64,000 nucleotides of DNA from Amphiscolops sp. MND2022. Lineage: Eukaryota. The notes under the pieces were generated by a model that was given only the letters and a program-made list of their open reading frames with translations, searched no databases and had not been told where the DNA came from. Below, in pieces: positions 39,935 through 41,168 of the stretch; the first letter of the stretch is position 1, and every line of letters starts with the position of its first letter. Both the position numbers and the translations under genes were made by a program. The stretch covers positions 71,300,001-71,364,000 of the forward strand of contig OZ076411.1 in NCBI GenBank assembly GCA_964187785.1, in the 5' to 3' direction.

Positions 39935-40063
39935 GACACGAGGTTGGTCATGGCGATAATCTCGGGGTTGTTCTTGAAGGGCTTGGCCTCCTGTGAGTCG
40001 AAGGGGTTGATGGCGGATTGGGTGAGCATGTTGGCTAGCACCAGGTACTTGAGACAGGTGGTC
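39935..40063 (-). CDS. COPS2: COP9 signalosome subunit 2, exon 8
   Basis: ctcacag|[40 protein letters not shown]|gttagt. Confidence 0.95.
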
Positions 40064-40070
40064 CTGTGAG

Positions 40071-41064
40071 TAGGGGTTTTCAAAAATTCATTGATGAAAA
40101 ATTAATTGCAATTAATAGTGTAAATAATTGATTGCTAAGTTACCAATCAATTGAAAGATTGTTTTCGATGAATTCAATTAATTGCCCCATTATTTAGCGT
40201 GTACAATTTGTTCAAAAAAAGCGAAAAACTTTGTTCGAAAAAAAAAGAAAAATCTACATGACGCCAAGTTTCATTTTACCAACATCAGACATGGTTGAGA
40301 GGTTTTTCAGCAACGCCGGTTTCGCATATTCAGATTATTGTCAAGCATTATTGCCAATGGACCCTGAAATGCAGCTTTTTTAAAGGCGAATCATCGATTT
40401 TGGGACGATCACACAGTGGCCAAAGTCAACAAGCCGGGAACGGCCCAAGTCGGCGCCATATCTAAGGCAGAAAAATAGCAAAAGGACTTCAAAGTGCCGA
40501 GTATTATTTTCTACAGTACCCGAATGAAGAAAAAAAATTTCAAAATTTTTTCCGAAGTTTTTTTGAAGTCTCCGGTAAGTCGCCTAGTGCCGAAAAATGT
40601 GAAAGGGGACCCTTTGGGTCTTTTTGAACATCCATTCTGTTGCAAAATAGAAAAAGGGACCCTTTGGAGACATTAAAAAAATTGCGAAAAAAGTATCACA
40701 AAGCCGAAATAACATGCACAAAAAAATTGGTCAAGGGTGAGGCCTTTGACTCGAACCCACGCCCTTCTGCTTGGCAGACCTCAAAAAATTAATTAACCTC
40801 TATGCCAAGTGCCAGTAGAAGTAACAGTTTAGTGTGGCCGTTAGTGGAAGCCAGCTTATAAAATCTGTGACTTCGTTGGTCTTTTAAAAAGCCAGTCTAA
40901 AAAGAAAAGCGCCGACTAAAAATCCACAGAAGGACGGTGATGAATGATTGGCCAATTAATTGCAATTTAATTTTTGTGAGACCAATTATTTGATAATTAA
41001 TTGTTCTTTTTAAAATTAATTGCAATTAAATTTTTTGGGTTGAAATTAAATGTTGAAAACCCTG
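40071..41064 (+). mobile_element. Internally deleted hAT element forming CSN2 intron 7 (intron 40064-41065)
   Basis: Ends TAGGGGTTTTCAA / TTGAAAACCCTG; TSD CCTGTGAG (40063-40070) / CCTGCGAG (41065-41072); subterminal ATTAATTGCAATTAA at both ends; transposase C-terminal remnant ILPTSDMVERFFS..LFLKANHRFWD (~40273-40410). Confidence 0.9.
40428..40922 (+). mobile_element. Interspersed repeat family A nested inside the intron-7 hAT
   Basis: AACAAGCCGGGAACGGCCCAAGTCGGCGCC..GCGCCGACTAAAAA, with an internal antisense tRNA-like T-arm at ~40748-40780. Confidence 0.75.
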
Positions 41065-41065
41065 C

Positions 41066-41168
41066 CTGCGAGCGCTGCCAGACTCGTCGTAGTTCTTGAA
41101 GGCCTCGAAGAAGTCAGTGTGTGCTTTGTCGAACTCCTTCTCTCGCAAGTGCATCTTTCCTCCACACT
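41066..41168 (-). CDS. COPS2: COP9 signalosome subunit 2, exon 7
   Basis: ttccag|[37 protein letters not shown]|gcaggg (GC donor). Confidence 0.95.

Follow-up and report, generated by a model that had tools for sequence, protein, structure and literature searches.

Can a DNA transposon that enters the coding sequence of a conserved gene become a spliceosomal intron there, and what stood at the site before the transposon arrived? These questions are raised by a locus on contig OZ076411.1 of Amphiscolops sp. MND2022, within the 64,000-nt stretch of DNA analysed here (the window). The origin of new spliceosomal introns is a long-standing question, and introns made by transposons are well documented in protists, algae, and fungi. 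Introner elements, which Huff and colleagues reportedly described in 2016, are transposons that create introns on insertion. Most of the Introners that have been classified derive from TIR DNA transposons, across many superfamilies (Gozashti et al. 2025, PMC12130899). Among 835 animal and land-plant genomes screened, Introners were present in just two animal groups (Gozashti et al. 2022, PMC9860276).

Host gene and anatomy of the predicted intron

The host gene encodes COP9 signalosome subunit 2 (CSN2) on the minus strand. Translations of the flanking exons match CSN2, with exon-by-exon tblastn identities of ~63-89% to CSN2 of Cnidaria, Nemertea, and other sources, and of only ~40% in the diverged C-terminal exon. 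Homology is full-length and collinear and includes the PCI region; the matched proteins carry PF01399/PF25983. Matches among representative proteins were mostly fragments, and the comparison was bridged through a salmonid CSN2 that has an internal deletion (P0003). From exon 2 onward, the spliced model gives an intact 427-codon ORF that is collinear with CSN2 of many phyla, and in this gene model the frame is unbroken across nine exons (Table 1). The gene is single-copy as judged from two of its exons, each of which had one match when searched against the 1.07-Gb genome. All of its introns are GT-AG except the one between exons 7 and 8, which is the subject of this study.

Table 1. Features of the CSN2 locus, in window coordinates. 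A vertical bar in a sequence marks a splice junction; TSD, target site duplication.
Feature	Position	Strand	Description
CSN2 exon 7	41066..41168	-	103 nt; ends with AG of the second Arg codon; located by tblastn and gene model
CSN2 exon 8	39935..40063	-	129 nt; begins with G, ends with TC
Remaining CSN2 gene	34959..52976	-	exons 52976-52785, 49720-49667, 46968-46807, 45823-45746, 45329-45155, 38528-38289, 35109-34959
Predicted GC-AG intron	40064..41065	-	1002 nt; donor CAG|GCAGGG, acceptor CCCCTACTCACAG|G
TSD copy 1, CTCGCAGG	41065..41072	-	first seven bases exonic; last G is intron base +1
TSD copy 2, CTCACAGG	40063..40070	-	bases 1-7 form the intron 3' end with the acceptor AG; base 8 (G) opens exon 8
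Composite transposable element	40071..41064		994 bp; non-autonomous hAT-type element plus nested repeat
Nested SINE-like repeat	40428..40917	-	~490 bp; tRNA-like box GGGTTCGAGTC; thousands of genomic candidates
TIR at intron 5' end	41044..41064	-	CAGGG-TTTTCAACATTTAATT; one G missing relative to family CAGGGGTTTT
TIR at intron 3' end	40071..40092	+	TAGGGGTTTTCAAAAATTCATT on the + strand; first base mutated from family C (terminal G>A at the element 3' end)
Transposase C-terminus remnant	40258..40380	+	…ILPTSDMVERFFSNAGFAYSDYCQALLPMDPEMQLF, then frameshift to …FLKANHRFWDD; antisense to CSN2

On the minus strand, the intron and its borders read ...GGC AGC GCT CGC AG|GCAGGGTTTTCAAC...TTTTTGAAAACCCCTA CTCACAG|G ACC ACC TGT CTC AAG TAC. 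The intron consists of a G, a 994-bp TIR-bounded element, and CTCACAG, so that its 1002 nt equal 994 + 8 with nothing else inside. A first-pass annotation of this DNA had described the intron in the same way, as the element plus one TSD, and its coordinates were correct on re-reading. The sequence also agrees with its account of the splice sites: the donor GC is formed by the last TSD base and the first element base, and the acceptor AG lies inside the second TSD copy. The two TSD copies, CTCGCAGG and CTCACAGG, match at 7/8 positions, for which the chance is ~4e-4. The single mismatch is in the intronic copy, as had been noted earlier, and the exonic copy keeps CGC and hence the conserved Arg. 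The match of these flanks goes beyond chance, with the same termini and 8-bp TSDs found in other complete copies of the family. Because the intron holds only element and TSD bases, we conclude that no earlier intron lay at the insertion point and that the element entered continuous coding DNA.

The inserted element and related copies in other genes

The first-pass annotation treated the 994 bp as one element; it is in fact a composite. Searched whole, the sequence matched the genome only through its middle (query ~170-637), which is a repeat of very high abundance (6857 first-look candidates in the 1.07-Gb genome). When the two outer parts were searched separately, they were found directly adjoining each other in other genomic copies, which run straight across the insertion point of the nested repeat. 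The unit is therefore a ~505-bp element into which a ~490-bp repeat is nested. This SINE-like repeat differs by 7.2% from the consensus of 29 copies, a value typical for its family.

The SINE-like repeat also occurs as a head-to-tail array at G000:C13:32167044-32174282, with copies ~645 bp apart, an arrangement that SINEs do not usually show. The CSN2 intron at window ~50000-51100 is filled with related repeats. A tRNA-like box, GATTCGAACCCGGGACCT, at window 39852-39869 in the intron just downstream of CSN2 exon 8, probably belongs to another SINE-type repeat.

Aligned copies of the outer element define the family termini as CAGGGGTTTT…AAAACCCCTG, i.e. CAGGGG...CCCCTG. The TAGGG end that had been listed as a terminus is a terminal mutation in the window copy. 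Other complete family copies are flanked by 8-bp TSDs, perfect or with one mismatch. Set against the hAT target preference nTnnnnAn, T is at position 2 in 11/14 TSDs and A at position 7 in 8/14, in a small sample.

Assignment to the hAT superfamily had been based on the transposase C-terminal remnant. The assignment stands, on other grounds: the 41-aa remnant matched no family in a Pfam search. The remnant peptide matches at least 150 genomic places, some within open frames of 300-520 codons. One longer family member (L058, 1197 bp) has a 274-aa ORF that matches zf-BED at 26.9 bits versus a cut-off of 20.6, and the C-terminus of this ORF is 80% identical to the window remnant. Pfam gave no match to PF05699 (hAT C-terminal dimerisation domain) in either the remnant or the L058 ORF, and the copies retrieved included no full-length partner. 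Atlas neighbours are BED/hAT clusters, with scores of just 0.81-0.82 that serve only as a lead. Judged from the sequence, membership of the hAT superfamily is well supported by the 8-bp TSDs, the CAG-type TIR, and the BED finger in the longer family member.

A second, different hAT element lies on the minus strand at window 43141-45003, in the intron that separates CSN2 exons 6 and 7. One terminus, CAGGGGTGTAAAAAAG, was identified at 44988-45003, with no matching second terminus in the window. Its transposase frame is in pieces, and Pfam matches to the BED finger and the hAT dimerisation domain are weak and below cut-offs. BLASTP returned no alignment between the remnant in the intron studied here and the C-terminus of this neighbour, which is therefore of a different family.

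Copies of the element family, or elements with the same TIR, were also identified within coding sequences elsewhere. Among 15 other family copies retrieved regardless of flank, only L032 (G000:C1:90973333-90976663) is in coding sequence. This 481-bp copy, at locus 1500-1980, is 81% identical to the window element and interrupts a long exon of a CLC chloride channel gene (Pfam PF00654, E 1.8e-26), just after the CBS region. The TSD, CTTCAGGT, is present on both sides and provides both the GT and the AG of a GT-AG unit. Removal of the element and one TSD (481 + 8) restores an open frame of >259 codons.

Sites with AGG immediately ahead of the TIR, sought by pattern matching, were few. Of the eight newly retrieved, two (L091 and L095) have recognisable 3' ends. 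L091 (G000:C4:13894188-13896888) contains a 457-bp MITE at locus 704-1160, with the same CAGGGGTTTT TIR and an unrelated interior, in an M16 peptidase exon of a Peptidase_M16_C gene. The flanking TSDs are ATTACAGG and ATAACAGG. Removal of the MITE and one TSD (457 + 8) restores …AYHAQYYR|PDNLTLIITG…, the unit splitting the conserved …YYR|PDN… motif. This is a predicted GC-AG intron of the CSN2 design, and the mismatch is again in the intronic TSD copy.

By these comparisons, related elements appear to make introns in several unrelated genes of this genome, with at least three such introns (CSN2, CLC, and M16) in a small sample. The earlier suggestion of a general intron-gain route in this genome gains the predicted CLC (GT-AG) and M16 (GC-AG) units; the sampled cases number just three.

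Predicted removal of the element from the CSN2 transcript

We enumerated every GT or GC donor and AG acceptor near both element-exon junctions. Nine donor/acceptor pairs are in frame and stop-free. Only the GC at 41065 paired with the AG at 40064 keeps the conserved SGSARRTTCLKY; each of the eight others deletes 6 to 18 conserved residues. The enumeration bears out two statements of the first-pass annotation: that the GC-AG junction leaves the protein unchanged, and that the nearby GT at 41060, which would add 5 nt, is out of frame with the acceptor. The predicted spliced junction, 41066/40063, reads …GCTCGCAG|GACCACC….

Searches for sequencing runs of this organism found five, all from one study and none recorded as RNA, and four of these were mapped on the locus. 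Introns and exons are covered alike, and the runs are therefore genomic DNA. Contigs from two samples (two individuals) bridge both element-exon junctions, and depth across the junctions is near that of flanking unique sequence (e.g. 29.0 versus 28.4; 70.6 versus 80.1). Among the joints listed for genomic reads on the locus, none was an empty-site joint. Because the SINE-like repeat is nested inside the element, the hAT insertion must be older than the 7.2% divergence of that repeat. A dead 1.3-kb ORF of that age would be expected to carry stops or frameshifts. Given that the gene is single-copy and intact, that the insertion is old, and that both individuals carry the element, we infer that the element is removed from the CSN2 transcript as a GC-AG intron.

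The predicted donor, CAG|GCAGGG, is of moderate quality, matching 6/9 consensus positions. The CSN2 intron resembles U2-type GC-AG introns in having GC at +1/+2, a 3' AG, and consensus bases at -3 to -1, +3, and +5, but differs in having G at +4 and +6. Over the remaining consensus positions, typical GC donors (AAG|GCAAGT) are the better match. In the predicted RNA fold, both intron ends pair in a duplex of -51.5 kcal/mol, versus -16.9 ± 3.7 for shuffles, and the predicted pairing with the 3' TIR covers donor positions +4 to +13. Such pairing of the intron ends would bring the splice sites together; the part that involves donor positions +4 to +13 could hinder U1.

Alternatively, the element could be removed at another junction, from a GT donor 18 nt upstream (CGA|GTCTGG) to the same acceptor, yielding a protein that lacks SGSARR, or there could be several isoforms. 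The upstream site is a canonical GT, in frame and stop-free, and the predicted GC donor has moderate strength and lies in part within a predicted stem. However, with A at -1, C at +3, and T at +4, the upstream site is a weak donor, and the six codons that would be skipped are unbroken and agree with the conserved SGSPRR seen in other phyla. The M16 peptidase case, moreover, has the AGG|C design too, inside a conserved motif. We therefore regard the use of another junction, or of several, as unlikely. A disruptive insertion, with the CSN2 allele broken or the gene dying and the element no intron at all, would be in line with exon insertions normally being knock-outs, but seems very improbable in a single-copy gene that is established as essential in animals, whose ORF is intact across nine exons, and in which the insertion predates a nested repeat now 7% diverged and is present at full depth in two individuals.

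Removal of the element as a GC-AG intron, the reading that we prefer, has a parallel in maize, where Ac/Ds (hAT) insertions in genes are spliced out of pre-mRNA, as known from the work of Wessler. Giroux and colleagues are said to have described, in 1994, a de novo intron derived from Ds in shrunken2. The maize and CSN2 cases share the superfamily, the 8-bp TSDs, and the tolerance of an exon insertion via its removal as an intron. In maize, however, most of the splice sites fall within Ds itself, the element is removed imprecisely, and the alleles are those of laboratory mutants, whereas removal of the CSN2 element would be exact and its insertion is old and apparently fixed.

An ancestral intron position 3 nt upstream

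We compared CSN2 loci of five phyla, represented by Nematostella, Tubulanus, Branchiostoma, Patella, and Owenia, with exons mapped exactly. The first-pass annotation had proposed checking that orthologues lack an intron at this codon. The second Arg codon is free of introns in all five, yet each of them is interrupted 3 nt upstream by a phase-2 intron that splits the first Arg codon (…SGSP AG|gt…ag|G CGG ACN ACN TGT). The refuting condition that the annotation had set, an intron position shared with orthologues, is thus escaped by a single codon. The window gene encodes the first Arg with an uninterrupted CGC, and its intron splits the second Arg codon after two bases (GCT CGC AG|…|G ACC). The placement is thus AR|R, phase 2, versus P|RR, phase 2, in the orthologues. 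Exon 7 is 103 nt long versus 100 nt in the orthologues, and exon 8 is 129 nt versus 132 nt. There are no protein indels, and the 3-nt intron offset is therefore real. In Owenia fusiformis (L087), a CSN2 intron at an ancestral position, after residue 216, uses a GC donor (gcatga…ag).

The eight other introns of the window gene are at ancestral positions and phases (82/0, 100/0, 154/0, 180/0, 238/1, 315/2, 395/2, and the exon 1/2 boundary). Two further introns common to all five orthologues, 348/1 and 376/0, have been lost from it.

The fused state of exons 7 and 8 was observed in another animal. A Logan contig from run SRR30952542 (L088; an AT-rich animal) has CSN2 exons 7 and 8 joined at 1065-1315 (AGC CCA AGA AGA ACA). 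The Arg-codon intron is gone and both neighbouring introns are kept, which is the required intermediate state, in an unrelated animal.

Loss of the ancestral intron from the window gene is plausible because 348/1 and 376/0 were also lost and because L088 shows exons 7 and 8 fused. We infer that the ancestral intron was lost first and that a transposon-made intron was then regained 3 nt downstream. The earlier claim of intron gain holds insofar as the element entered uninterrupted coding DNA, but the site was not virgin, a lost ancient intron having been one codon away. To look for a close relative with an empty site, the ORF that spans exon 8 was used as a protein query; it found only the window's own ORF, the remaining matches having <=86% identity.

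A different account of the offset is that the ancient metazoan intron slid by one codon, that the transposon is merely inside it, and that the TSD-like 8-mers are splice consensus plus chance. An intron is indeed found 3 nt away in five phyla, and the eight other CSN2 introns are ancestral. CAGG would also be expected at both boundaries, and the probability that three of the four remaining bases match by chance is ~5%. However, insertion into an older intron would leave old sequence on both sides, and there are just 1 nt and 7 nt outside the element. All eight of these extra nucleotides are accounted for by the 8-bp duplication that is seen in other family copies. Sliding of an ancient intron is, in our view, highly unlikely.

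Entry of the element while the ancestral intron was present was considered at three places: the exon 7/intron border, the intron/exon 8 border, and a 3-nt micro-exon. Each of these histories needs extra substitutions, or an intron that does not end in AG, to arrive at the flanks seen here.

Insertion into uninterrupted coding sequence is thus the origin that we favour. The transposon origin of the CSN2 intron is strongly supported, and we consider it likely that a hAT-type insertion made this intron after loss of the ancestral intron 3 nt upstream. The lineage would first have lost the pan-metazoan intron of the first Arg codon. The continuous CSN2 coding sequence would then have been entered, at CTCGCAGG, by a non-autonomous hAT-type DNA transposon (CAGGGGTTTT…AAAACCCCTG) that duplicated the target. 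With a target ending in AGG and an element starting with C, a usable intron would have been made at once: the last TSD base and first TIR base would form the 5' splice site, CAG|GC, and the CAG of the second TSD copy would form the 3' splice site. The element 3' end would supply the pyrimidine-rich CCCCTG/CTC run and the branch site. Splicing would take out the element and one TSD and leave …SGSARRTTCLKY… unchanged. Later, the SINE-like repeat would have inserted in the element and the element would have decayed, while the gene stayed intact. At least two further introns of this genome would be products of the same TIR group. For the CSN2 event, replacement of a lost ancient intron is a more apt description than intron gain at a site that had always lacked one.

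By our own estimate, the chance that a new intron placed at random comes to lie within 3 nt of a lost ancestral position is ~2-6%. Given this low chance, some link or filter may exist. As a speculation, the candidate filter is that the exon around the former intron was still suited to splicing, with AG|G protosplice sites.

Two other models of intron evolution bear on this locus. Rogers reportedly proposed, in 1989, that introns are gained by tandem duplication. In that model, as in CSN2, a duplicated segment containing AGG supplies both splice sites; in CSN2, however, the duplication is the TSD of a transposon and the intron body is the transposon. In terms of intron sliding (Lehmann et al. 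2010, PMC2891723), the 3-nt offset of CSN2 would be scored as sliding, but the shift would be explained by loss and re-gain, with no migration of splice sites.

The closest likeness is to Introners, in which a non-autonomous TIR element and its TSD likewise make up the whole intron, splice sites come from the TSD and the element end, and several genes are affected. The present set differs in consisting of three predicted cases from limited sampling, two with a composite GC donor (TSD G plus TIR C) and the third with a GT wholly in the TSD. The CSN2 case differs further in being one codon from a lost ancient intron. The CSN2 intron would be a new member of the known Introner-type mechanism, which is rare in animals and is itself already established. 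Of interest here are the animal host, the composite GC donor, the signs of a small intron family, and the near-coincidence with a lost ancient intron.

More broadly, and as a tentative proposal that we rate slightly below even, the genome may host a hAT-based Introner system. At any NNNNNAGG target, CAGGGG…CCCCTG MITEs would produce a GC-AG intron, and at any NNNNAGGT target a GT-AG intron, with the TSD used for the splice sites. This would have happened repeatedly in conserved genes, and in CSN2 it would have re-created the lost pan-metazoan intron one codon away.

These observations suggest a tractable animal system for the conversion of DNA transposons into introns, including introns with the rare GC donor. 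Comparative studies would score the CSN2 intron as conserved or slid, which would hide both a loss and a gain. If true, re-creation of the CSN2 intron one codon away would provide a concrete mechanism for apparent intron sliding.
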